Source: Epithemia pelagica
Taxonomy: Eukaryota; Protista; Bacillariophyta
Direction of reading: 5' to 3'
Assembly: GCA_946965045.2 (NCBI GenBank)
Contig: CAMPTO020000005.1
Span: 15,815-79,814 of the forward strand
Length of the DNA: 64,000 bases
The notes beneath the pieces were generated by a model. That model saw only the letters and a program-made list of their open reading frames with translations. It had not been told where the DNA came from and made no database searches. The position numbers were made by a program, and so were the translations under genes. Numbering within the stretch: position 1 is the first letter of the stretch; each line of letters begins with the position of its first letter. Shown piece by piece: positions 34,131 through 63,520 of this stretch.

Positions 34131-37100
34131 TAGGCTCTGAACTCGTGTATCCCAGACCAAAAGTCTTGTTGTAGACCATACAAGTGTCGCGTTGTCGATG
34201 TCCCAAGCTTCCATGGACATGGAGCAAAGACGTTGTCGATGTCCCAAATTACCATGGACATGGAGCAAAGACTCTCTTCTATAACTCGAATCGCTCCAAA
34301 TATTGGTAGAGACACTTGGGGTATCATAGACATCGACGTCATAGGCTCTGAACTCGTCTATCGCGGACCAAAAGTCTTGTTGTAGACCATACCGGTCTTG
34401 CGTTGTCGTTGTACCAAATTACCATGGACATGGAGCAAAGACACCCTTCTATAACTTGAATCGCTCCAAATTTCGGTAGAGTTACTTGGGGTATCATAGG
34501 AATGGACGTCATAGGCTCTGAACGCGATAAGCATGGATGTCATTGGCTCTGAACTCGTCTATCGCGGACCAAAAGTCTTGTTGTAGACCATACCGGTGTC
34601 GTGTTGTCGATGTCCCAAACTTCCATGGACATGGAGCAAAGACACCCTTCTATAACTTGAATCGCTCCAAATTTCGCTAGAGACACTTGGGGTATCATAG
34701 GCATGGATGTCATAGGCTCTGAACTCGTCTATCGCGGACCAAAGGTCTTGTTGTAGACCATACCAGTGTCGCGTTGTTGATGTACCAAACTTCCATGGTC
34801 ATGGAGCAAAGACAGCCTTCTATAACTTGAATCGCTCCAAATTTCGCTAGAGACACTTGGGATATCATAGGCATGGATGTCATAGGCTCTCAACTCGTCT
34901 ATCGCGGACCAAAAGTCATGTTGTAAACCATACCGGTCTTGCGTTGTCGTTGTACCAAATTACTATGGACATGGAGCAAAGACACCCTTCTATAACTTGA
35001 ATCGCTCCAAATTTCGCTAGAGACACTTGGGGTATCATAGGCATGGATGTCATAGGCTCTGAACTCGTCTATCGCGGACCAAAGGTCTTGTTGTAGACCA
35101 TACCAGTGTCGCGTTGTCGATGTACCAAATTACCATGGACATGGAGCAAAGACACCCTTCTATAACTTGAATCGCTCCAAATTTCGCTAGAGACACTTGG
35201 GATATCATAGGCATGAATGTCATAGGCTCTGAACTCGTCTATCGCGGACCAAAAGTCTTGTTGTAGACCATACCAGTGTCGCGTTGTCGATGTCCCAAAT
35301 TACCATGGACATGGAGCAAAGACTCTCTTCTATAACTCGAATCGCTCCAAATATTGGTAGAGACACTTGGGGTATCATAGGCATGGATGTCATAGGCTCT
35401 GAACTCGTGTATCGCGGACCAAAAGTCTTGTTGTAGACCATACCGGTCTTGCGTTGTCGTTGTACCAAATTACCATGGACATGGAGCAAAGACACCCTTC
35501 TATAACTTGAATCGCTCCAAATTTCGGTAGAGTTACTTGGGGTATCATAGGAATGGACGTCATAGGCTCTGAACGCGATAAGCATGGATGTCATTGGCTC
35601 TGAACTAGTGTCGCGTTGTCGATGTCCCAAGCTTCCATGGACATGGAGCAAAGACGTTGTCGATGTCCCAAATTACCATGGACATGGAGCAAAGACTCTC
35701 TTCTATAACTCGAATCGCTCCAAATATTGGTAGAGACACTTGGGGTATCATAGGCATGGATGTCATAGGCTCTGAACTCGTGTATCGCAGACCAAAAGTC
35801 TTGTTGTAGACCATACAAGTGTCGCGTTGTCGATGTCCCAAACTTCCATGGACATGGAGCAAAGACACCCTTCTATAACTTGAATCGCTCCAAATATTGG
35901 TAGAGACACTTGGGGTATCATAGACATGGATGTCATAGGCTCTGAACTCGTCTATCGCGGACCAAAAGTCTTGTTGTAGACCATACCGGTCTTGCGTTGT
36001 CGTTGTACCAAATTACCATGGACATGGAGCAAAGACACCCTTCTATAACTTGAATCGCTCCAAATTTCGGTAGAGTTACTTGGGGTATCATAGGAATGGA
36101 CGTCATAGGCTCTGAACGCGATAAGCATGGATGTCATAGGCTCTGAACTCGTCTATCGCGGACCAAAAGTCTTGTTGTAGACCATACCGGTGTCGTGTTG
36201 TCGATGTCCCAAACTTCCATGGACATGGAGCAAAGACAGCCTTCTATAACTTGAATCGCTCCAAATTTCGGTAGAGACACTTGGGGTATCATAGGCATGG
36301 ATCTCATAGGCTCTGAACTCGTCTATCGCGGACCAAAAGTCTTGTTGTAGACCATACCGGTCTTGCGTTGTCGTTGTACCAAATTACCATGGACATGGAG
36401 CAAAGACACCCTTCTATAACTTGAATCGCTCCAAATTTCGCTAGAGACACTTGGGGTATCATAGGCATGGATGTCATAGGCTCTGAACTCGTCTATCGCG
36501 GACCAAAGGTCTTGTTGTAGACCATACCAGTGTCGCGTTGTCGATGTACCAAATTACCATGGACATGGAGCAAAGACACCCTTCTATAACTTGAATCGCT
36601 CCAAATTTCGCTAGAGACACTTGGGATATCATAGGCATGAATGTCATAGGCTCTGAACTCGTCTATCGCGGACCAAAAGTCTTGTTGTAGACCATACCAG
36701 TGTCGCGTTGTCGATGTCCCAAATTACCATGGACATGGAGCAAAGACTCTCTTCTATAACTCGAATCGCTCCAAATATTGGTAGAGACACTTGGGGTATC
36801 ATAGACATCGACGTCATAGGCTCTGAACTCGTGTATCGCGGACCAAAAGTCTTGTTGTAGACCATACCGGTCTTGCGTTGTCGTTGTACCAAATTACCAT
36901 GGACATGGAGCAAAGACACCCTTCTATAACTTGAATCGCTCCAAATTTCGGTAGAGTTACTTGGGGTATCATAGGAATGGACGTCATAGGCTCTGAACGC
37001 GATAAGCATGGATGTCATTGGCTCTGAACTAGTGTCGCGTTGTCGATGTCCCAAGCTTCCATGGACATGGAGCAAAGACGTTGTCGATGTCCCAAATTAC

Positions 37101-40100
37101 CATGGACATGGAGCAAAGACTCTCTTCTATAACTCGAATCGCTCCAAATATTGGTAGAGACACTTGGGGTATCATAGGCATGGATGTCATAGGCTCTGAA
37201 CTCGTGTATCGCAGACCAAAAGTCTTGTTGTAGACCATACAAGTGTCGCGTTGTCGATGTCCCAAACTTCCATGGACATGGAGCAAAGACACCCTTCTAT
37301 AACTTGAATCGCTCCAAATATTGGTAGAGACACTTGGGGTATCATAGACATGGATGTCATAGGCTCTGAACTCGTCTATCGCGGACCAAAAGTCTTGTTG
37401 TAGACCATACCGGTCTTGCGTTGTCGTTGTACCAAATTACCATGGACATGGAGCAAAGACACCCTTCTATAACTTGAATCGCTCCAAATTTCGGTAGAGT
37501 TACTTGGGGTATCATAGGAATGGACGTCATAGGCTCTGAACGCGATAAGCATGGATGTCATAGGCTCTGAACTCGTCTATCGCGGACCAAAAGTCTTGTT
37601 GTAGACCATACCGGTGTCGTGTTGTCGATGTCCCAAACTTCCATGGACATGGAGCAAAGACACCCTTCTATAACTTGAATCGCTCCAAATTTCGGTAGAG
37701 ACACTTGGGGTATCATAGGCATGGATCTCATAGGCTCTGAACTCGTCTATCGCGGACCAAAAGTCTTGTTGTAGACCATACCGGTCTTGCGTTGTCGTTG
37801 TACCAAATTACCATGGACATGGAGCAAAGACACCCTTCTATAACTTGAATCGCTCCAAATTTCGCTAGAGACACTTGGGGTATCATAGGCATGGATGTCA
37901 TAGGCTCTGAACTCGTCTATCGCGGACCAAAGGTCTTGTTGTAGACCATACCAGTGTCGCGTTGTCGATGTACCAAACTTCCATGGTCATGGAGCAAAGA
38001 CAGCCTTCTATAACTTGAATCGCTCCAAATTTCGCTAGAGACACTTGGGATATCATAGGCATGAATGTCATAGGCTCTGAACTCGTCTATCGCGGACCAG
38101 AAGTCTTGTTGTAGACCATACAAGTGTCGCGTTGTCGATGTCCCAAATTACCATGGACATGGAGCAAAGACACCCTTCTATAACTTGAATCGCTCCAAAT
38201 ATTGGTAGAGACACTTGGGGTATCATAGGCATGGATGTCATAGGCTCTGAACTCGTGTATCGCAGACCAAAAGTCTTGTTGTAGACCATACAAGTGTCGC
38301 GTTGTCGATGTCCCAATTTTCCATGGACATGGAGCAAAGACACCCTTCTATAACTTGAATCGCTTCAAATATTGGTAGAGACACTTGGGGTATCATAGAC
38401 ATCGACGTCATAGGCTCTGAACTCGTCTATCGCGGACCAAAAGTCTTGTTGTAGACCATACCGGTCTTGCGTTGTCGTTGTACCAAATTACCATGGACAT
38501 GGAGCAAAGACACCCTTCTATAACTTGAATCGCTCCAAATTTCGGTAGAGTTACTTGGGGTATCATAGGAATGGACGTCATAGGCTCTGAACGCGATAAG
38601 CATGGATGTCATTGGCTCTGAACTCGTCTATCGCGGACCAAAAGTCTTGTTGTAGACCATACCGGTGTCGTGTTGTCGATGTCCCAAACTTCCATGGACA
38701 TGGAGCAAAGACACCCTTCTATAACTTGAATCGCTCCAAATTTCGGTAGAGACACTTGGGGTATCATAGGCATGGATGTCATAGGCTCTGAACTCGTGTA
38801 TCGCAGACCAAAAGTCTTGTTGTAGACCATAACGGTCTTGCGTTGTCGTTGTACCAAATTACCATGGACATGGAGCAAAGACACCCTTCTATAACTTGAA
38901 TCGCTCCAAATTTCGCTAGAGACACTTGGGGTATCATAGGCATGGATGTCATAGGCTCTGAACTCGTCTATCGCAGACCAAAAGTCTTGTTGTAGACCAT
39001 ACCGGTCTTGCGTTGTCGTTGTACCAAACTTCCATGGACATGGAGCAAAGACAGCCTTCTATAACTTGAATCGCTCCAAATTTCGCTAGAGACACTTGGG
39101 ATATCATAGGCATGAATGTCATAGGCTCTGAACTCGTCTATCGCGGTCCAAAAGTCTTGTTGTAGACCATACCAGTGTCGCGTTGTCGATGTCCCAAATT
39201 ACCATGGACATGGAGCAAAGACTCTCTTCTATAACTCGAATCGCTCCAAATATTGGTAGAGACACTTGGGGTATCATAGGCATGGATGTCATAGGCTCTG
39301 AACTCGTGTATCGCAGACCAAAAGTCTTGTTGTAGACCATACAAGTGTCGCGTTGTCGATGTCCCAAACTTCCATGGACATGGAGCAAAGACACCCTTCT
39401 ATAACTTGAATCGCTCCAAATATTGGTAGAGACACTTGGGGTATCATAGACATGGACGTCATAGGCTCTGAACTCGTCTATCGCGGACCAAAAGTCTTGT
39501 TGTAGACCATACAGGTCTTGTGTTGTCGTTGTACCAAATTACCATGGACATGGAGCAAAGACACCCTTCTATAACTTGAATCGCTCCAAATTTCGGTAGA
39601 GTTACTTGGGGTATCATAGGAATGGACGTCATAGGCTCTGAACTCGTGTATCGCGGACCAAAAGTCTTGTTGTAGACCATACCGATGTGGCGTTTTCGAT
39701 GTCCCAAACTTCCATGGACATGGAGCAAAGACACCCTTCTATAACTTGAATCACTCCAAATATTGGTAGAGACACTTGGGATATCATAGGCATGGATGTC
39801 ATAGGCTCTGAACTCGTCTATCGCGAACCAAAGGTCTTGTTGTAGACCATACCAGTGTCGCGTTGTAGATGTACCAAACTTCCATGGACATGGAGCAAAG
39901 ACACCCTTCTATAACTTGAATCGCTCCAAATTTCGCTCGAGACACTTGGGATATCATAGGCATGGATGTCATAGGCTCTGAACTCGTGTATCGCGGACCA
40001 AAAGTCTTGTTGTAGACCATACCAGTGTCGCGTTGTCGATGTACCAAACTTCCATGGTCATGGAGCAAAGACACCCTTCTATAACTTGAATCGCTCCAAA

Positions 40101-42620
40101 TTTCGCTAGAGACACTTGGGATATCATAGGCATGGATGTCATAGGCTTTGAACTCGTCTATCGCGGACCAAAAGTCTTGTTGTAGACCATACCAGTGTCG
40201 TGTTGTCGATGTCCCAAACTTCCATGGACATGGAGCAAAGACACCCTTCTATAACTTAAATCGCTCCAAATTTCGCTAGAGACACTTGGGGTATCATAGG
40301 CATGGATGTCATAGGCTCTGAACTCGTGTATCCCAGCCCAAAAGTCTTGTTGTAGACCATACAAGTGTCGCGTTGTCGATGTCCCAAGCTTCCATGGACA
40401 TGCAGCAAAGACACCCTTCTATAACTTGAATCGCTCCAAATATTGGTAGAGACACTTGGGGTATCATAGACATGGACGTCATAGGCTCTGAACTCGTCTA
40501 TCGCGGACCAAAAGTCTTGTTGTAGACCATACCGGTCTTGCGTTGTCGTTGTACCAAATTACCGTGGACATGGAGCAAAGACACCCTTCTATAACTTGAA
40601 TCGCTCCAAATTTCGGTAGAGTTACTTGGGGTATCATAGGAATGGACGTCATAGGCTCTGAACGCGATAAGCATGGATGTCATAGGCTCTGAACTCGTCT
40701 ATCGCGAACCAAAGGTCTTGTTGTAGACCATACCAGTGTCGCGTTGTAGATGTACCAAACTTCCATGGACATGGAGCAAAGACACCCTTCTATAACTTGA
40801 ATCGCTCCAAATTTCGCTCGAGACACTTGGGATATCATAGGCATGGATGTCATAGGCTCTGAACTCGTGTATCGCGGACCAAAAGTCTTGTTGTAGACCA
40901 TACCAGTGTCGCGTTGTCGATGTACCAAACTTCCATGGTCATGGAGCAAAGACACCCTTCTATAACTTGAATCGCTCCAAATTTCGCTAGAGACACTTGG
41001 GATATCATAGGCATGGATGTCATAGGCTTTGAACTCGTCTATCGCGGACCAAAAGTCTTGTTGTAGACCATACCAGTGTCGTGTTGTCGATGTCCCAAAC
41101 TTCCATGGACATGGAGCAAAGACACCCTTCTATAACTTAAATCGCTCCAAATTTCGCTAGAGACACTTGGGGTATCATAGGCATGGATGTCATAGGCTCT
41201 GAACTCGTGTATCCCAGCCCAAAAGTCTTGTTGTAGACCATACAAGTGTCGCGTTGTCGATGTCCCAAGCTTCCATGGACATGCAGCAAAGACACCCTTC
41301 TATAACTTGAATCGCTCCAAATATTGGTAGAGACACTTGGGGTATCATAGACATGGACGTCATAGGCTCTGAACTCGTCTATCGCGGACCAAAAGTCTTG
41401 TTGTAGACCATACCGGTCTTGCGTTGTCGTTGTACCAAATTACCGTGGACATGGAGCAAAGACACCCTTCTATAACTTGAATCGCTCCAAATTTCGGTAG
41501 AGTTACTTGGTGTATCATGGGAATGGACGTCATAGGCTCTGAACTCGTGTATCGCGGACCAAAAGTCTTGTTGTAGACCATACCGATGTGGCGTTTTCGA
41601 TGTCCCAAACTTCCATGGACATGGAGCAAAGACACCCTTCTATAACTTGAATCACTCCAAATATTGGTAGAGACACTTGGGGTATCATAGGCATGGATGT
41701 CATAGGCTCTGAACTCGTGTATCGCGGACCAAAAGTCATGTTGTAGACCATACCGGTCTTGCGTTGTCGTTGTACCAAATTACCATGGACATGGAGCAAA
41801 GACACCCTTCTATAACTTGAATCGCTCCAAATTTCGCTAGAGACATTTGGGATATCATAGGCATGAATGTCATAGGCTCCGAACTCGTCTTTCGCGGACC
41901 AAAAGTCTTGTTGTAGACCATACCGGTGTCGCGTTGTCCATGTCCCAAACTTCCATGGACATGGAGCGAAGACAGCCTTCTATAACTTAAATCGCTCCAA
42001 ATATTGGTAGATACACTTGGCGTCTCGTTGTAGGCCATACCAGTATCGCGTTTTCGTTGTCTCAACCTTCCATGAGGGGTATGGAGCAACAACACCCTTC
42101 TATGACTTGAAGCGCTCCAAAATTCTGTACAGACACTTGCGGTATCGTAGGCATGGACGTCATAGGCGCTGAATTCGTCTATCATTGACGTAAATTATTG
42201 TTGTAGACCACACCGGTGCGGTGTTGTCGTCGTCCCAATCTTCCATAGACTTTTTGGAACAAAGACATTTTTCTTTTCATCTAATCGACCCAGGTATTGG
42301 TACATATCCTCGGGATATCATAGCCATGTGTACCATAGGCTCTGATCTCATGTGCCGTCAAGACAAAGGCTTGCAATAGATTAGATCGGTTTGGCGTTGT
42401 CGTTGTGCCAAAGTTGTATGGACATGGAGCAAAGAGATCCTTCTCTTCATGGAATCGGTCCAGATTTTGGAAGAGACCCATAGTGTCTCATTTTTATGGA
42501 TACCATAGGATCTGATCTCGTGATCTGTGACGAGAAAGGCTTGCAATAGACCATACCGATATAGCGTTGGCCTTGACATTGTCCAAAAATTTCGTACGCT
42601 CATTTCATCCTCCATTGATT
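34128..42620. repeat. 170-bp tandem satellite array 1 (~50 monomers) with higher-order repeats
   Basis: CATAGGCTCTG recurs at 170-bp spacing (34340, 34510; also 42334, 42504 in degenerate copies). Identical ORF-track peptides recur at 1424-bp (35220/36644, 35591/37015, 35952/37376) and 881-bp (39799/40680, 40158/41039) offsets. Divergence rises after ~41900. Confidence 0.97.
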
Positions 42621-42804
42621 CGTATGACAAAGCAAACAAGACTCAGAAATTCTTAGCGTTATTTGAATTTTTCCCCATAAAAACGATAAGAACTGAGAGA
42701 TAGTCAGGATCAGTTGTTTTCTCTGAAGTACATCTTCTTCCAACCGCAAACAGAAATCCTCGCACCATTACTCTTCAAGAAGACCGTTCGATATCGTATA
42801 AAAG

Positions 42805-43680
42805 ATGGAAGACTCGTCTTGGTTGAATACTGTTGCAATATGGAATCTCATCTCGAATACACGATTTGATGTTGAAACTTCGTTTTGTCTTCGTAGCAGT
42901 GATAGGAATGTTGTTCTCACTGAAGATGTTGCAGCGGCAGCCGAAGGAATCAAAAACGAATTCAAGGATCTTGTAGACAAGATTATTAATCACGAGGGAC
43001 GACTTGATGTGATTTCCATTATGAATGGTAATAAGGAGGGATATACAGAAGAGCACCAGTGTCAGATGGGCACATGGGCAGACAGACCGGAATTCCTTGA
43101 CGGACCCTTCATCTGGAAACAAAACTTCCTCGAGACATGTCTTGTTTGCGGTAAATTCACCTGTAATCAACAGGTAACAAGATACACATGCAAACATTGT
43201 TTCCGTCCTTTACAAGTACCTGGGTCGTCTTCATCTTGTGATACCACTTGTGCAAAGACTCCCTGTACTTCATCCATGAACATGTCCTTCGTATGGGAGT
43301 TCTGTATGACTTTAAGAGAGGCATTCCAAGCGTGGTTTGACTTCCACAAGTTTGGAAAAAACAGAAAGATTCCCTTTTTTGAATATATCCCAGCCGAAAC
43401 TTGTGGCATCTTGACAAAAACGGTCGGTAAAGTATGGAGAGAAAAATTGGAGCCTTATTACAACGAGGATACCAAGTGGCGTAGTCCATCTCATTTCATT
43501 CACACCGAGAAACAATGGGCATTGTGGCTGATTTCTTCACCACCTGGTTGCTCCTTTCGCAACTATATGCCTATTTTTACTGCATGTTATCACATAGCGC
43601 AGGAAAATCCAAAGAAACACGCTGCTGGTGTACCACACCAGAGTGCTCGTAAGAAGCAAAAGACGTGGAATGCTCCTTGA
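42805..43680 (+). CDS. Cys-rich protein of unknown function (element-borne)
   Basis: Intact 291-aa ORF. CLVCGKFTC..YTCKHCFRP..C..FVWEFCMTLREAF resembles CKGCLRPC..FIWRFCMIVRRAL in 58383-58814. Confidence 0.65.
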   Translation: MEDSSWLNTVAIWNLISNTRFDVETSFCLRSSDRNVVLTEDVAAAAEGIKNEFKDLVDKIINHEGRLDVISIMNGNKEGYTEEHQCQMGTWADRPEFLDGPFIWKQNFLETCLVCGKFTCNQQVTRYTCKHCFRPLQVPGSSSSCDTTCAKTPCTSSMNMSFVWEFCMTLREAFQAWFDFHKFGKNRKIPFFEYIPAETCGILTKTVGKVWREKLEPYYNEDTKWRSPSHFIHTEKQWALWLISSPPGCSFRNYMPIFTACYHIAQENPKKHAAGVPHQSARKKQKTWNAP

Positions 43681-43719
43681 ATTTGTTTTTCCTTGGTGAT
43701 GAATGCATCCAGAAAGAAT

Positions 43720-45333
43720 TTATAATGTTCCGCTACGAATGCCTTGAACCGTTTTGGTTATACCATGGTCCTCTCTTGTTTCGTTGACAGTTGCATTCAT
43801 AGACCTGGAACTTACTGCCCAAAACCAACTAATAGTGTCGTTCTTCATGTTCCCATCTGTATGTTGTCTTTGTTTGTGTATTGACGTTCCATGCCGGATC
43901 ACACGTCCATCCCATAGAACCGAAACCCCATGAAATAGTTGTATACAAAGACCATGGTATGTAGTACCATCATATTCCACAAGAATATTCGGCAAAACAA
44001 AGAACCAATTTTGGGAGTCACCTGGGATTGTCTCTGTCCAGATTGCGAATGAAACAGAACCATCGTGAACATCATAGTGTGTCGTGTTCATGAGGTTCAA
44101 ACTCAGGGTAATGGCTGAGGTCATACCTCCGACTCTTCCTCCGAATTCACTAGGCATTTCTTCGCCAGCTGAATCTTCTAGATACCGGAATGTTGGAATC
44201 ACCCCAGGATATTCGCGTTCACAGAACCTTTTTGCCGCTGTACTTATTTTCGGCAGTATCATCGATAATGTCTTGTCCTTTGTAAATAATTTCTCGGAAA
44301 CGAAAGTAGAACCGTTTCCTCTTGTCGCAGTATTACCAACAGTAGTCATAGATCCTAAGTCTCCCTTATTACATCTGGCATTGGCCGCCTTTCTCAGAGA
44401 CCCAGTACGTGTAAATTCCCTTGCTCTGTGGTGTAATAGGTCCAACAACGTCTGGTCTTTCCGTAACAGAGATGTCACTCGAATGTAACTAAGTGACTCT
44501 GGTCTCCCATCATTTCGGCGTGTCCGAACAATGAAAGTAATGTTTCCCCGAATACGATGGTCGTATACCAGTGGCCTTGGGTGTGTACCGGACGACATTT
44601 GCAACCATAGGTTTCGATGCAAAGCACCACTAACATATCTCCGACTCCCTTTCTTATCTGAGTCATTCCTGGTTATAATCAGCCTTGTTCGATATTGTTC
44701 CCGTGACATGTGATGTGTCATCGACTGTTTATTCCCTGGCTTTTCGATCTTTCCCTTGTCATCGAGGTACACGTCAGGAGGTAAAAGTGGGCTCCCATCC
44801 TCCACATCGGACCATTGGTAACATTCCTTCACAGTTTTGTCATTATTAGTAAGATGTTCACCCCAATCTAGACTCCAACAACGATGAATCTTTTTCAAGA
44901 ATGCATTACTTGCAGGTTGGCCATCTTTGTGTCGCAGACGTAACCAAGACAACGGTAGTGGGACTGATGACGATGTGATGTTGGACGACCTTGATAGTTC
45001 TTGAAATTGACGCACACATGTATAAAAAACCCCAGCCAAAGGGAAGAGGATAATAATATCTCTGAAGAGGTGATCATTTTCGTCAAGACATAAGTTTTTG
45101 TTAGTCCGAATCATCATGACAGGATCTTTGAATATAGAGGACGACACATGTGTTGTCTTTTTCCTGATTTCTCTATATCTTGTCCTCGACAAGGTACATT
45201 CCAATATGAATGCATTGTGGATCGTTTTAGTTACAAGACCCACCGGGATTTGAGTAACAATCATAGGACAACATTCTGGTATAATGTTCGAATGACTGAC
45301 AACGTCATCTCTTGTCTCCACAACATCATCCAT
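43720..45333 (-). CDS. TET/JBP-like 2-oxoglutarate-Fe(II) dioxygenase
   Basis: Uninterrupted ORF; likely ATG at 45333. C-terminal N-x-x-H-Y-D-V-H-D (HxD at 44071-44079), WFFVLPN, I.L.HG.SVLWDGRVIRHGT (distal His at 43891-43893) matches the double-stranded beta-helix metal-binding pattern. The canonical 2OG-binding Arg is not obvious. Confidence 0.6.
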   Translation of the reverse strand: MDDVVETRDDVVSHSNIIPECCPMIVTQIPVGLVTKTIHNAFILECTLSRTRYREIRKKTTHVSSSIFKDPVMMIRTNKNLCLDENDHLFRDIIILFPLAGVFYTCVRQFQELSRSSNITSSSVPLPLSWLRLRHKDGQPASNAFLKKIHRCWSLDWGEHLTNNDKTVKECYQWSDVEDGSPLLPPDVYLDDKGKIEKPGNKQSMTHHMSREQYRTRLIITRNDSDKKGSRRYVSGALHRNLWLQMSSGTHPRPLVYDHRIRGNITFIVRTRRNDGRPESLSYIRVTSLLRKDQTLLDLLHHRAREFTRTGSLRKAANARCNKGDLGSMTTVGNTATRGNGSTFVSEKLFTKDKTLSMILPKISTAAKRFCEREYPGVIPTFRYLEDSAGEEMPSEFGGRVGGMTSAITLSLNLMNTTHYDVHDGSVSFAIWTETIPGDSQNWFFVLPNILVEYDGTTYHGLCIQLFHGVSVLWDGRVIRHGTSIHKQRQHTDGNMKNDTISWFWAVSSRSMNATVNETREDHGITKTVQGIRSGTL

Positions 45334-51662: not shown

Positions 51663-52586
51663 TTACTTACAAACGCGACTGACTCCTCCACCACCACCAC
51701 CACCACCACCACCCATAACCTCTTCCATAATATTTTCAACATCTTGGTGCGACATTACAGTCACACCACCATTGTCATTAGCTGCGCACTCAATATTATT
51801 TGTATCCATATGGTGCATCTGTGTTTGCTGTGGTTGGTGAACACCAACGCCTCCTTGCATCAGAACGCCCCCATTGGGTGGGTATGGGACAGACATCATC
51901 TGCTGTTGTGGGTATCCTTGATGCACCATTATACCAGTTCCTTGTTGTGGATAAATCGTAGATGATGAGGCCACCGGGAAATGATGATGTTGTTGCCCCC
52001 CAAGAGGAGCTTGGGAATAATTGAACTGTGTATGGACCTGATGTTGTTGTTGCCCTTGAGGAAGAAATGACAACACCGATGGATTTGGTTGCTGGTGAGG
52101 ATAAGGATGGGTATGATTCGGATATGGAGCAACTCCATTCGCATTATAAGGAACTCGTTGACCATGGTCGACTCCATTCATAACAGCAGTATTGTGTTCG
52201 GATTCCATAGGTGCTCCTGTATTAGTAACACCACGGGTTCTTGTACAGCTCATGGTACTACCTTGGTCCTGGGATTCGTTGGATGAAGCTCCCCGTCCTC
52301 CTCTTTCCTGAAATATTACCTGACTCTTTTCAGATACGGATCCTGAATCCTCTTGGTTACGGTCATCATTGCTATTCTTGTTGTTGACATCTCTGATCGT
52401 TATTTCTTCGTCGTCTGTTTCATCATCGGTACTGCTTTCTCCAGCATCTTTGCCACCAGATAAACCGTGGAACGCTGAATTCTTACTGCTTTGGTTGTCC
52501 TTTTTATCTTGCTTTGGATCACCACAGTGTTGGCTTCCTTGTTTTCTATTCTTGGTCCCCTGGTTTGTTTCAGAATGGGGCGACAT
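51663..52586 (-). CDS. Low-complexity acidic/Gln-His-Pro-rich ORF, possibly the first exon of the accessory gene
   Basis: 307-aa ORF. GTAAGT donor at 51670, but no in-frame acceptor could be assigned. Confidence 0.45.
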   Translation of the reverse strand: MSPHSETNQGTKNRKQGSQHCGDPKQDKKDNQSSKNSAFHGLSGGKDAGESSTDDETDDEEITIRDVNNKNSNDDRNQEDSGSVSEKSQVIFQERGGRGASSNESQDQGSTMSCTRTRGVTNTGAPMESEHNTAVMNGVDHGQRVPYNANGVAPYPNHTHPYPHQQPNPSVLSFLPQGQQQHQVHTQFNYSQAPLGGQQHHHFPVASSSTIYPQQGTGIMVHQGYPQQQMMSVPYPPNGGVLMQGGVGVHQPQQTQMHHMDTNNIECAANDNGGVTVMSHQDVENIMEEVMGGGGGGGGGGVSRVCK

Positions 52587-53014
52587 GACAAGAAGAGTAT
52601 ACCTGATATAAGAAGTGTTGACAATGCAATGAGTTTTGGATGCAACAAGAGGAGAATGTTATGCCAATCCGTTTTCATTGAGGTATTACCTTTTGACTAT
52701 CAACTTTCAAAAGTCGAGCCGTTACACCCGGTTTTTTTTTGAATTGAACCAAATCGACAGGCGACAATTATACATTCAAACGTCCAATGCCACATGGGCA
52801 TTTGTGTTCGTTCCGATCCCATGTACTGATAGACTCATAGTTTATGTGGAATAGTATGGGGGATGGGGGGGGGGGGGGGGGGGGGTAAACCATATCCATC
52901 CACAACCAATGAGAAAGCGAGCCGGGCGACCATAAAATCGAAACCATTCGTGTCAGTCGTCACACTAGCAATGATTCTCATTCCACAAAGACTAAGGACC
53001 ACAAAACCAATACC

Positions 53015-56000
53015 ATGGGCCGTCCTTGTAAACCAAGGTATTTAAGAAATAAACCTTCCGTCATCAAAGATCAATGGGTGGGCGAAGATCCAAATGCGAG
53101 TACAGGTGGTTCCATTCTTCCATGTCGTAAATGTAGAAATTGTCATGTATTATTCCACGTCTCCGGTATCTTCCAACATGAAAGGGTTTGTAATACCAAG
53201 AGAGAAAACGGCACTTTGGTCTCACATGCATTGGAGCACGAATCGTCCATGATATGCCACGAAACTGCTGGAGTCGAGAACAATACCTCTCATGATAAAG
53301 ATCAGGGAAATCATTTAGAAAATGGAGGAACCGATGATAGTGCTGTAGGGATTTCAGAAAATGGAGGTACCGATGATAGTGCTGTAGGGATACCCTGGGC
53401 GGACGATCGAGAAGATGAGGAAAGAGAGGATCTGCAACCCACTACACAAAAACAACCCATCGTGAGAAAGCCATGTCGGAATAGTACAAATATTGCTCAT
53501 TCCTTGCTGTCATCTGAGAATGAGGAAGAATCAGATGAGGACCAAGAAGAGGGACCACCAGCAGATCATGATGATGGGCTCCAACAACCTGTCGATGACA
53601 ATGAGGATGTCCAAGGCAAAGGTTCATCCAGTGATGACCATGTTATCGATGAAAACTCAAAAGACAATCCTTTGGAATTTCCAGTGTATCTTGAACAAAA
53701 TGGTCTCCGATTTTCCGAAGATGACAAGGCTTTATTAAGGTTGGCCATACTCCTCCGGAATGCTGGGTGTCCGAAGTTCATGCTCGATGCCATTTTGGCA
53801 TGGATTGATTCTACTAACGAGTGTTGTGGCTCACGTTTTTTCAATAAAAAACATCCACGGCGAAAGAGATTCATGGCGAAATTCGAAAAAAGAGGTTTCG
53901 ATTTCCCCAAACCAAAGATTGTCACCGTCCCAATGGAAGTTACAACCAAAAAGGATATAATCATTCCAGACAGCGAGAAGTCCGTTGATACCGTTATATT
54001 TGATTTTGTGCATCAACTTCGACGTGTCTTGCAAGATCCTGAAGCCACTTCCAAGGATAAAACAATATTATGTGATGACGACCCGTATCGCCCTTATATA
54101 CCGAATAAATGTCTCGAAAACATACAAGATGGCCATGTTTTTGCCAACGTACCGTACGGAAATACAGACATGACAACGATACTTTCGTTGTTGGTTTATT
54201 GTCTTATATGGATAAGACACACGCGACGGGGGATGGTCGGTTTAATGCGGAACCAGTTGTTATGGTACCTTCATTTTTGACGATGTCTGAAATGCCAAAA
54301 CCGAATAGACAAATCATCTTAGGGTTGATCACAGATATGGAACGGAAGTCATCTGCGGCCAAATACATCTTGGAAAGGGGGTCCCTCTGTCGGAATTATC
54401 ATGCACAGCTCTCGCGAATACACCAAGCTCTTTTGAAGATACAGAATCGAGGTGGATTGCGGATGCGATTACGGATCCATGGGATCGAGAAGGTGGTGAG
54501 ATTAGTATTACCCGTGATCATGATAAAGGGAGATGCGAAGTCACAAGATAACATCGCAGGAAGATATGCATCTCATCATCAAAGTGTTGGCCGGCTTGTT
54601 TGGCAGTGTGATTGCACACCTCGGGAGTCTAGATACCCATGGTCCACATGCAACTACCTCTTCAAAAACCCTATCCATTTCAGAAGCCTCCGTGTGCTTG
54701 GTTTAGAAAAACCATCAGGAAACCCAGTAGTTATCGATTCTGGACAACCCGGTATAGATGATCCAAGAGAGGATCCTTGGAGAGAACCTGTGAACAATTC
54801 CAAGAAAATTTTACATCAGATTGGACAATACCCAGTGAACAACATCTACAACCATTTGTATTTGGGTGAGGGTGTTAATAAAACACATGGGATTTTTACC
54901 GCAGCATGTTGTGATGTATTACATACTTTGAAATCGGGGATCATGAAATATATCATGACTGATTTCTTTGCTCTGATGACAATGAGAGAAAAAGCCATGT
55001 TTGATTTCTTGTACAGCTCTTTCTTCTGAGCCAACCGGCAGTTGGTATTCTCTTATTCTTCTAGTTGGGGGTACCCCAGAACATCCCTCTCTGCAGGTAT
55101 CAGTAATGTTACAAAGGTAACAGCCAATGAATGGGTTGGTATCATGTTTGTCTCAGCCGCTTTGTGTGTTTCTGTTCGTGGTCATCTTATTTTCGCTTCG
55201 ACTATGGCGGAGAAATGGAAAAAAGTAGTTGCAGAGTGGAAACAATGATGCAAAGAAGAAGAAGAGAGACGAAAGAAAAAGGAAGAAGAGAAAGAACAGA
55301 AGAGAAAGAAAAAACAATTAGAAAAAAAAAGAAAAAACGACAACGAATGGGCGCTGGACAAAACAACGTATCCTCTACCAACAATAAACGTCAACGACAA
55401 TCGAAAAAGAAACGGGTTGTGCACCACAGTATCGCTGATGATTCATCCGATTCGGATGAGAATGACTTATCTGTGGATGATAGGAACGAAGAAATAACCA
55501 CAAATATCAACGACAATCTGCCCGGTCATGTACAGGAAAATGAAGATTACCAATATTGTGAACCTGACATTGAGGTACAGGTTACGAGCGAAACAGTATT
55601 CGACGATGACCCTGTGGCATATGCATCAATCTGGGATGAAGGTGAGCGGGAACCATATCTGGATTTTCTCTTCCTGTTTGAGACAATACTCTGTTTCAAC
55701 AACTGGACAAGGATGGATAGATTTTGGGATAGCGACCCACGTTCTCCTGCCGCGAAGGAAACAGCGCAACGATCAGTTGAATCTGTCAAGATAATGATGG
55801 ATGGTATACGGCGGTATGCACCACGATTGGATAAAAAAGGGAAACTGATGTGCAATGGTTGGATGATCCCAAAATACCACAACTTGGTACATATAGTTTG
55901 ACAGGTGTCCAATTTCGGCCCAGTTAAAATATCGGACACTGAATCAGAGGCGAGTAACCACAAAGAAATCGTCAAACTGAATGCCAAAACAGTACAAAAA

Positions 56001-57146
56001 CGGGGTAAGGGTGTCTTCGACAGTCAACTTGGTGATAATATACGGCAGATGCAGGCATGGGATCTGCTCTGTAAAGCATCTGGGATCAAACAAGATGACG
56101 TGGAGCTACTAAAAAATGGTCAATCTCCAACCCTTGCTGCAAGGAAAAAAAGAAGTCAAGTGTATCATAATCATGAGAATGATGACGAGGAAAATGAAGA
56201 AGATAGATGTAAATTCAAGGGGCGAGGGACAACAATACAAATCCAATTGGTCAGATCTGGACGGACAGAGAGCCCCGTGGTCAAGTGTACTTACAAGTAT
56301 ATTTCGAAAACAAATACCGGTATGATCCTCCCAAAAGTAATCCTTGACTTTCTGGTGAAACATGCAGGTGCACTCTTCACACAAATGAATATAATACAAC
56401 AGAATGACACAAGTGATTACATCATGATCCATGGGTGTACAGAGGTCAAATTCAGGGACGAAAACATAGGTGGTATCCGATGTCATCCGAATTTCCAAAG
56501 TGAGGGTCCTTGGAGAGACTGGGTGAGAGCATGGATCCCACGACACCAGCGTACACCATTCACTGACACTGCAACAGGTAATCAGGGAACAGACAATATC
56601 TTGGTACTCTGTCAGGTTTTATGCTTCATACGCAGACCATGGGAACAACGGGAAAGTGCTGGTTTCATGCAAGAACAGGGAAATGATCCTCGTACATCAA
56701 GAATCCACCAAGAAAATCCGAGAGATGTCACACATGCTTTACTACGAACCACTTATTGTCGTAGTGACAAGGATAAAGAGAAGTCCTCCGTCCTTTTCAT
56801 TCGATGGAGCAAGGCCTTTACCCGGAATTCCCGCGTTCCCGATCTTGTAGTGGTTCCTTTCACCAATATATTTGAATTGGTAGGAGTGATCGATGAAAAC
56901 CCGGAAATGATCCAACACCGAGATAAGGTACCGGAATACCTGTATTCTGATGCGGAAAGAGAAATATTGCTTGAATATACTCGGAATCACAGGAACTATT
57001 CCGATATTGTATGGGAGGTACTTCCTGCCAGTAAATGGGCCAAGGAGTTCAATGACTCAGCAAGTGATTCGTTGAGAGCAAGATATACATCTTCATCAGA
57101 TCCTTCACAAACAACAACAACAGATCGTAACACTGCTGGATCATGA
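53015..57146 (+). pseudogene. Plavaka-like transposase with N-terminal zinc finger, disrupted
   Basis: Consecutive fragments: CRNCHVLFHVSGIFQHERVC; FDFVHQLRRVLQDP; LLSYMDKTH..GRFNAEPV; RNYHAQLSRI; KGDAKSQDNIAGRY..CDC; CDVLHTLKSGIMKY; YPRT..GISNVTKVTANEWVG; PKYHNLVH; NFGP..DTESEASNHK; CHPNFQSEGPWRDWV. Frameshifts near 54150 and 55325; in-frame TGA at 55027, 55246 and 55899. Confidence 0.75.
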
Positions 57147-57728
57147 AGGTGTCAGTGAAAGTTGTTCTGTATAACCAATGGGGGGGGGGTGGGGGTGGGG
57201 GTGGGGGTGGTGGTTTCCAACCACCAACAAAGGTCATGGGGGATGTCCGAGTGGTATCCATACTATTTATTTCAGAGAAGTGGTCCCAAAAATATACTCC
57301 CCAATATGTCGGAGTGGTACTCCGTTTATTAAAAAGAGTGACACGTGATGAGGGATAGTATGAGATAGATGTCCATGTGGTATCCACAAACGGCAGCCGA
57401 CCCATTATTCTTCATAAAAAAACAAAGACATCTTAGTAGATGTCTCGTCTCTTCTTTTTCTTGAATGTGAAAGGTTCATTCTGTTTGATCATCAAGTAAT
57501 CATTTTTACACAAGCGGTGAGATAATACTCTCTGGCTTAAGCAATGTTGAGCAATCCATACAAAAAACCACGCACCATGACGAACCCATACAACAAACGC
57601 CAAAAACCACAAAGTACCAAACCACAAAACAAGGGGGACTTAGTGAAAGCCGTGGAAACAATCTTCATCCAGAAGAAACCCAGTTCCAAAATGACGGCGA
57701 CATCACATTTCTCGAGGATTTATTTCAA

Positions 57729-58814
57729 TTGAGAGAAGAGAAATTCCAGAAAGAGAACAAAGGACATCACAAAAATAACAACAGCAACCACGTCGGTGAA
57801 TTGGCACCACGAGTAGGAGATGTCAGCTCTCCTGAACCAAGTATATCCGTCGAAGGGCATCACGAGAAAACAGAGTCTCCAAAGAAAACAGAGACTCCTG
57901 GTAACGTTGTTGTACCACCATCCATTCCCGATACAACTATCGTTCCTCATACTAATCCCAAGAAAACGGTCATTCGCAATCCATATGCGGTCAAAAGCCG
58001 TATCATTGACCCCTCTGTGGTCACTGCGAAATTTAAGATAATACCATTGGCTCCGGAATCACCGAGTTATTCTGATCGAGTCGGTGACCGAGATGCAGAC
58101 TTTCACCCTGAAGTGGTTAAGTTCACCAGACTTGCCAACGAGGTATTGGGTTCTACAGAGAATATAGCAGATGCCATTTGTCCAGTTTGTTTGTTTCAAG
58201 ATAACCCATCAACCGATCGGTATCTAACAGGAAAATTCTGGCATCCTTTTGGTACTACTCACCGGTGCCGTGACCATTGTTACGGTTGTGGGGTACATTG
58301 TGATGTATGCGAAACAGGCGGCAATGAATACAAATGCCGATAATGCATTTTCGACCACGATGGGAAACTCCATGATAAACTTGTGGATTGCACATGTACT
58401 TATGTTCCAATCATATGTAAGGGTTGCCTCCGACCATGCAATTCAAATGGAGAATGTGTCAGTATTCGGGTCTGTTGGAAGTCCAACAATAAATATTTCA
58501 TATGGCGTTTCTGTATGATCGTTCGAAGAGCCTTACTCTTGAATCAATGCAGGCCTGACCTGACTTCTGGGGTAGGAGGGATACCCCGATACACACAGGT
58601 GGTCATAGTCAAAGCAGTTCAACAGATGTACAAGGACCTCCGGTACCCCAATGAATCATCACAATTCTCTAGCCCCTTCATACACATGGGAACAGAGGTC
58701 GAGTGGACAAAATGGTTGGTATCAACCTGCTTCGGTCCCTTTTTCAATTACATGGTGTTATTCCGATACTGTTTCCAAGCCATCATGAACCTCAAAGAGA
58801 ATATCGCGACTTAA
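57729..58814 (+). pseudogene. Cys-rich protein (paralog of 42805-43680) with one in-frame TAA
   Basis: ORFs 57729-58343 and 58383-58814 are in the same frame, separated by TAA at 58341-58343. Multiple CxxC pairs (CPVC, CYGC, CDVC, CKGC). Confidence 0.6.
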
Positions 58815-58825
58815 ATTAAAACAGA

Positions 58826-61800
58826 CATCGATGTCCCAAACTTCCATGGACATGGAGCAAAGTCCGAATTTCGGTAGAGACACTTGGGGTATCATAGGCA
58901 TGGATGTCATAGGCTCTGAAATCATCTACCATGGACCAAAAGTCTTGTTGTTTACCATACCGGTGTGGCGTTACCGTTGTACCAAACTTCCATGGACACG
59001 GAGCAAAGACACCCTTCTATAACTTCAATCACTCCAAATTTCGGTAGAGTCACTTGGGGTATCACAGGAATGGACGTCATAGGCTTTGAACTCGTGCATC
59101 GCAGACCAAAAGTCTTGTTGTAGACCCTACCGGTGTCGCGTTGTCGATGTCCCAAACTTCCCTGGACATGGAGCAAAGACACCATTCTATAACTTGAATC
59201 GCTCCGAATTTCGGTAGAGACACTTGGGGTATTATAGGCATGGATATCATAGGCTCTGAACTCATCTACCATGGACCAAAAGTTTTGTCGTAGACCATAC
59301 CGGTGTGGCGTTGTCGATGTCCCAAACTTCCATGGACATGGAGCAAAGACACCCTTCTACAACTTGAATCACTCCAAATTTCGGTAGAGACACTTGGGGT
59401 ATCATAGGCATGGATATCATAGGCTCTGAACTCATCTACCATGGACTGAAAGTCTTGTTGTAGACCATACCGGTGTCGCGTTGTCGATTTCCCAAACTTC
59501 CATGGACATGGAGCAAAGACGCCCTTCTATAACTTGAATCGCTCCGAATTTCGGTAGAGACACTTGGGGTATCACAGGAATGGATGTCATAAGCTCTGAA
59601 CTCGTGTATCCCAGACCAAAAGTCTTGTTGTAGACCATACAAGTGTCGCGTTTTCGATGTCCCAAGCTTCCATGGACATGGAGCAAAGACACCCTTCTAT
59701 AACTTGAATCGCTAAAAATATTAGTAGAGACACTTGGGGTATCATAGACATGGATATCATAGGCTCTAAACTCGTGTATCGCAGACCAAAAGTCATGTTG
59801 TAGACCATACCAGTGTCGCGTTGTCGATGTCTCAAACTTCCATGGACATGGAGCAAAGACACCCTTCTATAACTTTGAATCGCTCCAAATTTCGGTAGAG
59901 TCACTTGGGGTATCATAGGCATGGATATCATAGGCTCTGAACTTGTCTATCGCGGACCAAAAGTCTTGTTGTAGACCATACCGGTGTGGCATTGTCGTTG
60001 TACCTAATTTCCATGGACATGGAGCAAAGACACCCTTCTATAACTTGAATCACTCCCAATTTCGGTAGAGACACTTGGGGTATCACAGGCATGGATGTCA
60101 TAGGCTCTGAACTTGTCTATCGCGGACCAAAAGTCTTGTTGTAGACCAAACCGGTGTGGCGTTGTAGTTGTACCAAATTTCCATGGACATGGAGCAAAGA
60201 CACCCTTCTACAACTTGAATCACTCCAAATTTCGGTAGAGTCACTTGGGGTATCACAGGAATGGACGTCATAGGCTTTGAACTCGTGCATCGCAGACCAA
60301 AAGTCTTGTTGTAGACCCTACCGGTGTCGCGTTGTCGATGTCCCAAACTTCCCTGGACATGGAGCAAAGACACCATTCTATAACTTGAATCGCTCCGAAT
60401 TTCGGTAGAGACACTTGGGGTATCATAGGCATGGATATCATAGGCTCTGAACTCATCTACCATGGACTGAAAGTCTTGTTGTAGACCATACCGGTGTCGC
60501 GTTGTCGTTGTACCTAATTTCCATGGACATGGAGCAAAGACACCCTTCTATAACTTGAATCACTCCCAATTTCGGTAGAGACACTTGGGGTATCATAGAC
60601 ATGGACGTCATAGGCTCTGAACTCATCTACCATGGACTGAAAGTCTTGTTGTAGACCATACCAGTGTCGCGTTGTCGATGTCTCAAACTTCCATGGACAT
60701 GGAGCAAAGACACCCTTCTATAACTTTGAATCGCTCCAAATTTCGGTAGAGTCACTTGGGGTATCATAGGCATGGATGTCATAGGCTCTGAACTTGTCTA
60801 TCGCGGACCAAAAGTCTTGTTGTAGACCATACCGGTGTGGCATTGTCGTTGTACCTAATTTCCATGGACATGGAGCAAAGACACCCTTCTATAACTTGAA
60901 TCACTCCCAATTTCGGTAGAGACACTTGGGGTATCATAGGCATGGATGTCATAGGCTCTGAACTTGTCTATCGCGGACCAAAAGTCTTGTTGTAGACCAA
61001 ACCGGTGTGGCGTTGTAGTTGTACCAAATTTCCATGGACATGGAGCAAAGACACCCTTCTACAACTTGAATCACTCCAAATTTCGGTAGAGTCACTTGGG
61101 GTATCACAGGAATGGACGTCATAGGCTTTGAACTCGTGCATCGCAGACCAAAAGTCTTGTTGTAGACCCTACCGGTGTCGCGTTGTCGATGTCCCAAACT
61201 TCCCTGGACATGGAGCAAAGACACCATTCTATAACTTGAATCGCTCCGAATTTCGGTAGAGACACTTGGGGTATCATAGGCATGGATATCATAGGCTCTG
61301 AACTCATCTACCATGGACTGAAAGTCTTGTTGTAGACCATACCGGTGTCGCGTTGTCGATTTCCCAAACTTCCATGGACATGGAGCAAAGACGCCCTTCT
61401 ATAACTTGAATCGCTCCGAATTTCGGTAGAGACACTTGGGGTATCATAGACATGGACGTCATAGGCTCTGAACTCATCTACCATGGACTGAAAGTCTTGT
61501 TGTAGACCATACCGGTGTCGCGTTGTCGATTTCCCAAACTTCCATGGACATGGAGCAAAGACGCCCTTCTATAACTTGAATCGCTCCGAATTTCGGTAGA
61601 GACACTTGGGGTATCACAGGAATGGACGTCATAGGCTTTGAACTCATCTACCATGGACTGAAAGTCTTGTTGTAGACCATACCAGTGTTGCGTTGTCGAT
61701 TTTCCAAACCATACCGGTGTGTCGTTGTTGTTGTACCAAGCTTCCATGGACATGGAGCAAAGACTCCGTTCTATAACTTGAATCACTCCCAATATCGGTA

Positions 61801-61855
61801 GAGACACTTGGGGTATCATAGGCATGGATATCACAGGCTCTGAACTCATCTACCA
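58826..61855. repeat. 170-bp tandem satellite array 2 (~18 monomers), same family and orientation as array 1
   Basis: Same monomer (CCATGGACATGGAGCAAAGAC...ACTTGGGGTATCATAGG...CATAGGCTCTGAACT). An 851-bp higher-order duplication is visible (60098/60949, 60268/61119). Has array-specific variants such as CATCTACCATGGACTGAAAG. Confidence 0.97.
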
Positions 61856-62818
61856 TGGTCTACAACAAGTCGCTGACAGAGACTCAGATGGTGATTTGCT
61901 CTCATTATTTGAAACAGTGAAAATGGTAGAACTTGTTGCACCATCACATTTACTGTCTGACGCTCGTTTACGGCGTTTCCTGTCTTGAGATCGTTGTTCA
62001 TGTCGCCCCTTTTGATACTCCTTCGTCTTTGTAGCGTATTCCCGTTCCGTCGTCTGGTAATATGAAATTAGAACCGCCAAATTGGAATAGTCGTTTGCGG
62101 GATACTTAGCAGCTCTTGGTATGTCAAAATAAGGACGAAACCAGCAATCAGGAAGTGTAAGGGCTAATGCTTTTTCAACATCGACTCCTTCCATTTCATA
62201 GGAGTCAGATTCCAATACCCGATAGACAGCTGCCATATGTTGAACGCTCCAAACCATTTCTCGGACTGGTATTGTTCTGTCTTTCCGAAACTTTGATCTA
62301 TCAGACGTCATGTAGTCCAATATTTTTGCAGCCACGACATTAAGCCGTCTCTCCATCGAATACAAGTTGAGGACAATATCAGCGAGCATAGGATGGGCTC
62401 CAAGAAAGACCTTGAGGGATCGAGTAAAGCTTGCGCTCGACTTTGATCTTGTCGTGAACGGGAATTCCTTGTCCCACAGACGAAGTGCGTCTCCATATAG
62501 AGTTTGTTCGAATAGGTCGATTCCTGGTGAAATAAAACTACCAGCTCCGTCACTCTTGTTTCCCTCTTGTTGTTCTTCGATCGTCTCTACAAGTCTCAGT
62601 ATCTTCGGGAAACAAACAGCAGCATGCGAGGCGATATCACTGAAAATACTTGATCCACAGCGCAAGAGGGATACGAATATGGTTTCACCTCCATATGTAG
62701 TGGAGAAATCTGTCCAATTATCAGTGTTGGAATAAACAGAACGATACCACTCGATTGTATATTCATAACATATCAAGTCTGGGAAATATCGATCGGAATC
62801 TTCTACCGAATCAGCCAT
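61850..62818 (-). CDS. Hypothetical protein (element cargo), basic C-terminal NLS-like tail
   Basis: Uninterrupted 322-aa ORF with no recognisable domain; RKRRKR near the C-terminus. The stop codon lies at the satellite junction. Confidence 0.55.
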   Translation of the reverse strand: MADSVEDSDRYFPDLICYEYTIEWYRSVYSNTDNWTDFSTTYGGETIFVSLLRCGSSIFSDIASHAAVCFPKILRLVETIEEQQEGNKSDGAGSFISPGIDLFEQTLYGDALRLWDKEFPFTTRSKSSASFTRSLKVFLGAHPMLADIVLNLYSMERRLNVVAAKILDYMTSDRSKFRKDRTIPVREMVWSVQHMAAVYRVLESDSYEMEGVDVEKALALTLPDCWFRPYFDIPRAAKYPANDYSNLAVLISYYQTTEREYATKTKEYQKGRHEQRSQDRKRRKRASDSKCDGATSSTIFTVSNNESKSPSESLSATCCRPW

Positions 62819-62934
62819 ATTAACGTGCGATTCAATCAGCTTGGGGAAGAAACAAGGAGAAATTTTCTTTCGATGCAGGGTTCCGATGCAACTTGATACT
62901 ACCGTTTCTCAAGCTTGCGTGATGGAAACCCTGG

Positions 62935-63520
62935 AGAGTATTGGTCGATAGGGATGGAGGAGTGAAGGATATGGGTGTACCAACTTGATGTCTCGGTCCT
63001 TCCAGTCAAGAATCAGTAGCAAATACAACAATCCAATAGGGTCTTGGTCGATAGAGATGGAAGAGGGAAGTATGGGGGCGCACCAACTTGGTGTCTCGGC
63101 CCTTCAACAGAACCACCAATCAAGATACAGCAATCCAATGGGGTCTTCTTGGTCGATGTAGATGAAGGAGGGAAGGAGAGGGGTGCACCAACTTGGTGTC
63201 TCGGCCCTTGTTCCAATCGGGAAGGAGTAGCAACACAGCAATCCAACAAGGTCTTGGTCGGTGGAGATGGAGGAGTGAAAATTGGGTGCACCAACTTGGT
63301 GTCTTGATCCTTGTTCCAATCGAGAAGGAGTGGCAACACAGCAATCCAACAGGGTCTTGGTTGATGGAGATGGAGGGGTGAAGGAAATGGGTGCACCAAC
63401 TTGGTGTCTCGGCCTCTGTTCCAATCGGGAAGGAGTAGCAACATGGCAATCCAACACGGTCTTGGTCGATGGAGGTGGAGGGGTGAAGGAAATGGGCGCA
63501 CCAACTTGGTGTCTTGGCCC
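62935..63520. repeat. ~105-bp tandem repeat, 6 copies, each with the palindrome CACCAA-C-TTGGTG
   Basis: Core at 62978 (variant), 63081, 63186, 63289, 63394 and 63499; spacing 103-105 bp. Confidence 0.9.

Follow-up and report, generated by a model that had tools for sequence, protein, structure and literature searches.

A giant Plavaka-like transposon family with internal satellite DNA and a TET-like gene in the diatom Epithemia pelagica, and two probable deletion derivatives at a chromosome end

Plavaka transposons are grouped with EnSpm, Mirage, Chapaev and Transib; they generate target duplications of 2–3 bp and the PlavakaB elements have CATCA termini (Kojima 2025, PMC12730594). TET-positive PlavakaB transposons were described in the fungi Agaricus bisporus and Gymnopus confluens (Kojima 2025, PMC12730594; Iyer et al. 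2014). Giant Plavaka elements of 17–19 kb that carry an accessory cassette, PAG1-3, were found in the red alga Bostrychia moritziana (10.1101/2025.02.11.637652). The present analysis concerns a window of 64,000 nt from Epithemia pelagica (contig C20, bases 15815–79814), to which all coordinates refer unless another contig is named. Its last 30 kb are a chromosome end, and the window closes in 80 telomere repeat units. With a probability that we put at about 85%, this region is a chromosome end built of nested mobile elements, among them two deletion-derivative copies (A and B) of one giant cut-and-paste transposon of the Plavaka lineage, named here family 1.

Family 1 and its relatives resemble the fungal PlavakaB transposons by their cut-and-paste character, by a Plavaka-like DDE transposase with 2-bp duplications (2–3 bp in the fungal elements), by the CATC-type termini found in a second family of the same genome (family 2, CATCT) and by a highly divergent TET/JBP-like dioxygenase, identified chiefly through its structure, for which an escape from methylation silencing is proposed. 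They differ from them by their host, which is not a fungus, by the CGTCT termini of family 1, by the lack of a direct Pfam Plavaka match, and by a larger element with at least five genes, including RING-like and Cys-rich ones, and two internal tandem arrays. Giant size and several accessory genes, of which one encodes a 2-oxoglutarate (2OG)-dependent oxygenase and adjoins tandem inverted-repeat arrays, are common to the diatom and red-algal elements. The red-algal oxygenase is, however, fused to a ParB-like domain and its cassette includes an N6-adenine/SET methyltransferase, whereas the diatom TET-like protein is without ParB and has RING-like and Cys-rich partners. A 170-bp satellite of 1–8 kb is an additional feature of the diatom elements. 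CACTA/EnSpm and Transib/RAG1 (CMC/CMCT) elements are alike in their short duplications of 2–5 bp, and RAG1 and Transib are the best structural matches of the diatom transposase, but the termini found here are not CACTA and Pfam Transposase_21 is unmatched. No description of such elements was found in the literature on Plavaka with diatoms or on JBP/TET with diatoms, in line with the initial annotation of this DNA, made from its sequence alone, whose author was not aware of a similar family in diatoms. The E. pelagica genome adds a third, unrelated host lineage, a pennate diatom, to the fungi with their TET/JBP-carrying transposons and the red algae with their giant Plavaka elements and 2OG-oxygenase cassette.

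Ends, copies and gene order of the element family

The 500 bp that precede 46450 occur 15 times in the genome at 99% identity, while the 3.4 kb starting at 49614 and the transposase region are found 13–15 times (97–98%). Pairing of the 15 right and 15 left ends (97–99%) on the same strand yields 12 complete elements, whose sizes are 7.9, 10.5, 14.6, 19.3, 19.8, 21.5, 22.7, 23.2, 25.0, 25.3, 25.9 and 26.1 kb. Intact members of the family are 20–26 kb long, and much of the overall range arises because array length varies, from ~1 to 8.3 kb. The initial annotation had assembled a giant family of 15–25 kb from the two partial copies of the window. The family is real, its 12 complete members spanning 7.9–26.1 kb, and both ends do bound single continuous elements in these 12 cases. 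The left end starts at the equivalent of 49613 with CGTCTAAGGG (CGTCTAAGGGCAGCG) in all 14 other copies, next to unrelated flanks, and the right end stops at the equivalent of 46453 with CCTTAGACG (CCTCCTTAGACG) in the nine other copies examined. The family-1 termini are a perfect 9-bp inverted repeat, CGTCTAAGG...CCTTAGACG. Its left half occupies 49613–49621 (+ strand), a position at which contigs of other copies break, and its right half 46445–46453 (+). Two-bp target duplications are found in seven of the eight pairs checked (AG, AA, TA, TG, CG, TG and CA; chance ~3e-8). The flanking AC dinucleotide that had been noticed beside the presumed ends does not represent such a duplication. Inside the right terminus, CACGCG motifs are clustered (46225–46405), with 11 ACGCG/CGCGT in a single 200-bp bin compared to a window mean of 0.29. 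Eight CGCGTG motifs are found in the right subterminal 230 bp while the left end has two ACGCG only.

The gene content of the family was read from an intact copy in another assembly (L041, which matches the copy on contig C6). It comprises, in this order, an accessory gene, the gene of a 1410-aa transposase, Cys-rich open reading frame (ORF) 1, the 170-bp satellite, Cys-rich ORF 2, the TET-like gene, a gene that encodes a RING-like protein of 1003 aa and an array of 105-bp palindromic units. After the satellite, L041 corresponds successively to 42022–45339 of copy A, to 2.9 kb absent from the window, to 61869–63520 of copy B, to a long 105-bp array and to 45333–46453 of copy A. The same order was found in seven further genomic copies. 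A related family of the same species (L046) has the accessory gene, transposase, Cys-rich ORF, TET-like and RING-like genes without the satellite, and the gene order is also kept in family 2, as far as it was read. The different genes that follow the satellite in copies A and B had been attributed to an exchangeable cargo slot. The intact copies hold both cargos in fixed order and the related families keep that order: the cargo is fixed, and copies A and B differ through deletions only.

Copy A (34129–46453, +; right end identical to that of nine other copies, compared with L041) has lost its left part by a deletion that starts in the flank, 7 nt beyond the element, and reaches into the satellite. 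About 46 satellite units remain at 34131–42020, with a 340-bp higher-order period (Tandem Repeats Finder (TRF); BLAST to L041), and degenerate units continue to ~42560. They are followed by Cys-rich ORF 2 (42805–43680, +; 291 aa), which has a homologous ORF in family 2, and by the TET-like gene on the minus strand. Alignment to L041 places a second deletion junction at 45333–45334, where ~4.8 kb are missing, which include the RING-like gene and the greater part of the 105-bp array; the junction falls at the ATG of the TET-like gene. Two units containing CACCAACTTGGTG represent the remnant of the palindromic array (45366–45721; TRF). Copy B (49613–63520, +; left end identical to that of 14 other copies, compared with L041) begins with the accessory gene, present as two ORFs of 204 and 232 aa (50253–51594, −; tblastn to L046 and to family 2 in C13) and conserved in three families. 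A low-complexity ORF (51663–52586) lies upstream of it. The transposase pseudogene is followed by Cys-rich ORF 1 (57729–58814, +), split into 204 and 143 aa in the window but undivided, with 411 aa, in the intact copy, for which an Atlas search gave no usable match, and by ~17 satellite units (58863–61852; TRF). From copy B 6.2 kb are missing, comprising Cys-rich ORF 2, the TET-like gene and the greater part of the RING-like gene, with a junction near 61868 that includes a small inverted satellite piece. The N-terminal 322 of the 1003 codons of the RING-like gene remain (61850–62818, −; gene 6466–9477 of L041, with weak RING matches), ahead of 5.6 units of the 105-bp palindromic array (62941–63522; TRF) cut by the telomere.

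Several correspondences between the two inserts recognised at the outset are confirmed by this comparison: the same 170-bp satellite in the same orientation (34231–42020 and 58863–61709; TRF, BLAST to L041), the same palindromic repeat (TRF) and a minus-strand ORF between the two arrays. The related Cys-rich ORFs noticed in both inserts are indeed homologous (BLASTP E 3e-12), but they lie on either side of the satellite and are two paralogous genes of one element rather than one gene in two copies. All of 29 candidate satellite loci and 17 array loci in the genome are inside element copies or remnants, with the exception of two divergent satellite loci (79–82%), so that the satellite and the array, expected to accompany the element genome-wide, occur essentially only within it. 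The family is a case of a satellite array that lives inside a DNA transposon and spreads with it. The two divergent satellites outside family 1 are at C10:3050386 and C18:2432209, the former at a distance of ~6 kb from a transposase of family 2, so that satellites of a related kind may be carried by related families.

Architecture of the chromosome end

Copy A is embedded in a Gypsy retroelement. The 5′ part of gag (tested stretch 33400–34128, +) has ~25 genomic copies at 92–98% identity, in comparison with which the Gypsy homology ends at 34128, restarts at 46452/46454 and ends finally at 49371. The continuation (46454–49371, +; Pfam and genomic copies) contains the rest of gag, the protease, the reverse transcriptase (RT) and RNase H, where it is broken at 49371. 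It matches RVP, RVT_1 and RT_RNaseH, and the RT/RNase H ORF (47637–49403) has the expected Pfam domains. The intact Gypsy sequence on a public contig reads ...CCTGTTGCT-TGG-CG-CAACGAG. Because just 7 nt of Gypsy and target (TGG+CG+CA) are missing around copy A, this copy is a true insertion in gag. Both inserts had been thought to break this same Gypsy; copy A does so, while copy B is unbounded on its far side and runs into the telomere at 63521, with no Gypsy sequence beyond it. A and B were also considered as halves of a single element, which is ruled out by their flanks, since these are different loci (TA in the module described below, CA in gag). The telomere repeats (63521–64000, +; TRF), in which the contig ends, start inside a 105-bp unit after ...GGCCCTT (63490–63522), with 2 nt in common with the repeat. 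The sequence of this joint fits healing of a chromosome break by telomerase, and the window illustrates the building of chromosome ends by such elements, by deletions and by telomere healing.

The 241 bp between the Gypsy break and copy B (49372–49612, +) are outside the element and belong to a subtelomeric repeat module. They occur at least 40 times in the genome, always near contig ends, and open a ~1-kb module at other chromosome ends whose start is always CCCTAAGGATATTT after varied upstream flanks; its continuation there is a common downstream sequence that is absent from the window. Copy B is placed in the module after ...CCATTA. The possibility that 49372–49612 is the left terminus of family 2 was rejected, because the interior copies of that family have their start, CATCTAAGG, 745 bp further in. 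Since these interior copies exclude the module and the family-2 element of C13, which sits in such a module, has an empty site kept in a C1 paralogue, the module is a subtelomeric repeat that was hit at least twice by Plavaka-like elements. The module opens with the CTAAGGA at 49371, whose likeness to the true terminal repeat C[A/G]TCTAAGG reflects either chance or old kinship. The subtelomeric modules of many chromosome ends, those of C1 (1–30000) and C13 among them, open with CCCTAAGGA after varied upstream sequence, and on C1 they make up a tandem repeat of 5.4 kb with several segments that all open with CCCTAAGGA in one orientation. This sequence is similar to one inverted telomere unit as well as to the terminal repeat of the Plavaka-like elements. 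Around the Gypsy/module joint (49360–49385), the native Gypsy sequence, with its TDHKNL codons, and the beginning of the module have scattered identity in common, and two more-divergent Gypsy copies align 10 nt past 49371. The sequence suggests a joint made through microhomology.

This architecture could have other origins than transposition into the present sites. Copies A and B might have arrived via subtelomeric segmental duplication or break-induced copying, their boundaries then being recombination breakpoints. The subtelomeric position, the adjacency of copy B to a repeat common to many chromosome ends, the location of 6 of ~20 family-1 loci at most 40 kb from contig ends and the Gypsy/module joint at 49371, which is itself a recombination or repair joint, speak for such an origin. 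We nevertheless judge it improbable, as positions 46453 and 49613 match the family termini to the base, the Gypsy is continuous across copy A save 7 nt and the module is broken after TA exactly at the first base of the element. Of the family-1 loci near contig ends, C20 has two, while C13, C16, C7 and C10 have one each; by length ~3% would be expected there, compared to 6 of ~20 (binomial p near 3e-5). Insertion preference for chromosome ends or better survival at them could account for the excess.

Slightly less probable still is that the family is real but that its pieces are not truly adjacent, the nesting being an artefact in the assembly of a contig that is short, unplaced and rich in repeats. 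C20 has only 79,814 bp, all components are multicopy, and junctions 34128, 46453, 49371 and 49612 are bridged by no public contig, these being short and broken at repeat boundaries. Yet the gag halves that flank copy A fit to within 7 nt, which a random chimera would not produce, and junctions within repeats that combine with specific deletions are improbable products of misassembly. The arrangement of the initial annotation, with termini CTAAGGA/TCCTTAG at 49371 and 46450, AC flanks and a cargo slot holding different genes in each copy, has hardly any probability left: its 7-mers are present (TCCTTAG at 46444–46450, CTAAGGA at 49371–49377) as exact inverted repeats at two Gypsy-defined junctions (chance ~6e-5 for fixed positions) and CTAAGG does belong to the true terminal repeat, but they are not element termini, the true 9-bp repeat being at 49613 and 46453, and this left end and the cargo slot are refuted by the survey of left ends (14/14 start at the 49613 equivalent, with unrelated flanks), by the at least 40 occurrences of 49372–49612 near contig ends without the element, by the interior family-2 copies, which likewise exclude the module, and by the intact copies with both cargos together.

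The transposase and the TET-like protein

The transposase of copy B is a pseudogene (53015–57146, +) with a 2-nt frameshift near 54143 and stop codons at 55027–55029 and 55902–55904, all identified by comparison with relatives whose coordinates continue across these positions. Other family-1 copies have open transposase frames of 860 to 1410 aa. A frame of 2730 aa at C3:489349–494193 contains the transposase core three times with 1980-nt spacing, an in-frame internal tandem triplication. A phmmer search identified 541 relatives of the transposase; those with E-values of 1e-15 to 1e-18 reach the gathering score that Pfam sets for Plavaka, and 24 of 41 sampled relatives match Pfam Plavaka and nothing else. 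Protein language-model features point to Plavaka (PF18759, 0.97) and weakly to Transposase_21 (0.89), a Pfam family to which the transposase itself has no match. Residues D23 (in the catalytic motif Y.DKT), D130 and D135 (in the catalytic motif GD..S.D), C155, C169 and H260 are invariant or nearly so; the D.MH..G motif and two Cys are conserved, and the C(2)C spacing does not occur in its exact form. Sequence searches of the Protein Data Bank (PDB) with single proteins and profiles returned nothing, for the TET-like protein either. The AlphaFold2 (AF2) model of the transposase core has a mean confidence (pLDDT) of 87.8, and its top 43 Foldseek matches in the PDB are all RAG1, followed by Transib and BbRAGL. 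Through the intermediates, the language-model features and the modelled fold, the transposase is assigned as a divergent relative of Plavaka with a predicted RAG1-like fold. The family-1 termini, CGTCT..AGACG, differ from those of PlavakaA (TGT..ACA) and PlavakaB (CATCA..TGATG).

The TET-like gene of copy A (43720–45336, −) is an open frame of 538 aa whose product is, by its modelled fold, a double-stranded beta-helix nearest to TET/JBP proteins, a TET/JBP-like 2OG-Fe(II) dioxygenase. Its AF2 model (pLDDT 81.7, predicted template modelling score (pTM) 0.87) matches TET2 in Foldseek with an E-value of 2.4e-10, and the top 25 matches are TET2, CMD1, CcTet and NgTET1. VIA gave Z scores of 19.0 for TET2 and ~16 for NgTET1, CcTet and CMD1, with ALKBH3, of the next family, at 11.9. 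Language-model features assign the protein to Tet_JBP clusters (0.95). The putative HxD...H iron triad is conserved: H420 is found in 44/44 sequences, D422 in 43/44 and H482 in 42/42 ungapped sequences. Single-sequence search identified 47 relatives and profile search 63, of which the only named one is from Fragilaria crotonensis; Atlas clusters are mostly Bacillariophyta. A link to the fungal PE-type TET proteins was not recovered, the 44-sequence profile search returning the same family only and no fungal relatives. The Plavaka-like element family with internal satellite, palindromic array and TET-like gene proposed at the outset is borne out, with 12 complete copies.

Linkage of the TET-like gene to the transposase extends beyond family 1. 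In the five metagenome contigs L042 and L047–L050 and in the Fragilaria crotonensis locus L051, a Plavaka-like transposase gene (profile E 1e-114 to 6e-21) lies beside the TET-like gene in convergent orientation. Outside the window's family, linkage is found at seven of eight loci, namely the L046 sister family and six of seven loci from elsewhere, a pattern that speaks for an ancient or repeatedly favoured association of base oxidase and transposase and not for a fungal oddity. The remaining locus (metagenome contigs L043–L045) is without this linkage: no Plavaka-like neighbour was found within 16 kb of its TET-like homologue (30% identity). An uncharacterised ORF of 1066 aa and a Copia-type RT flank the homologue there.

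The assignments made above have to be weighed with observations that count against them. Pfam Plavaka (PF18759) does not match the window transposase in hmmscan even at E 10; the protein stitched from 53015–57146, which had been called Plavaka-type at the outset, has no direct Pfam match when compared with Plavaka/CMC profiles, and Pfam scans of the element ORFs gave no Plavaka, CACTA or Tet_JBP match. The family-1 termini open with CG while CA...TG is usual for the group, and one of the eight pairs of ends checked for duplications (C17:1183549–1208880) is without a matching one. As for the TET-like family, all 44 members lack a Pfam match, including to Tet_JBP (PF12851), and, as regards a 2OG-binding Arg, the conserved R478 and R481 precede H482, after which there is no conserved Arg. 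The exact nesting is weakened by the window-specific junctions, unbridged by the short public contigs, and by the small size of C20, unplaced and 79.8 kb long.

Possible history and role, and related families

The region might have been formed in five steps. Copy A would first have inserted at CA in gag. A one-sided deletion would then have taken 7 nt of flank together with the element's left part up to the satellite, and a second deletion the RING-like gene. In a third step, the Gypsy would have been broken in RNase H and joined to the subtelomeric module, into which copy B would have inserted subsequently, unless it came with the module. Finally, copy B would have decayed and a chromosome break inside a 105-bp unit would have been healed by new telomere repeats.

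Regarding mechanism, the transposase would bind the terminal repeat and the CACGCG motifs and move the element by excision and reinsertion. Diatoms methylate their transposons. The TET-like enzyme may oxidise methylated bases and so counter methylation-based silencing of the element, and the internal arrays may be binding platforms for the element's own proteins. A speculative extension, which we regard as possible though rather unlikely, is a self-directed anti-silencing device: the TET-like and RING-like proteins and the two paralogous Cys-rich ones would be drawn to the 105-bp palindromic and 170-bp arrays of the element that encodes them and would keep it unmethylated. As a by-product, the family would seed satellite arrays of nucleosome length in diatoms and reshape their chromosome ends, where it is enriched. 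The same logic was proposed for PAG3 of the red-algal Plavaka elements. The 1410-aa frames present in some copies make the family a usable system to ask if a transposon erases its own methylation.

At least three related families are present in this genome. Family 2 is represented by a complete 12.76-kb element at C13:2964–15725 on the minus strand, with termini CATCTAAGG...CCTTAGATG and a TG duplication. It sits in a subtelomeric module, and the empty site is kept in the C1 paralogue. Its termini, CATCT..AGATG, agree with those of PlavakaB at four of five positions. Transposase frames of 1292 aa are present in ~20 copies of family 2.

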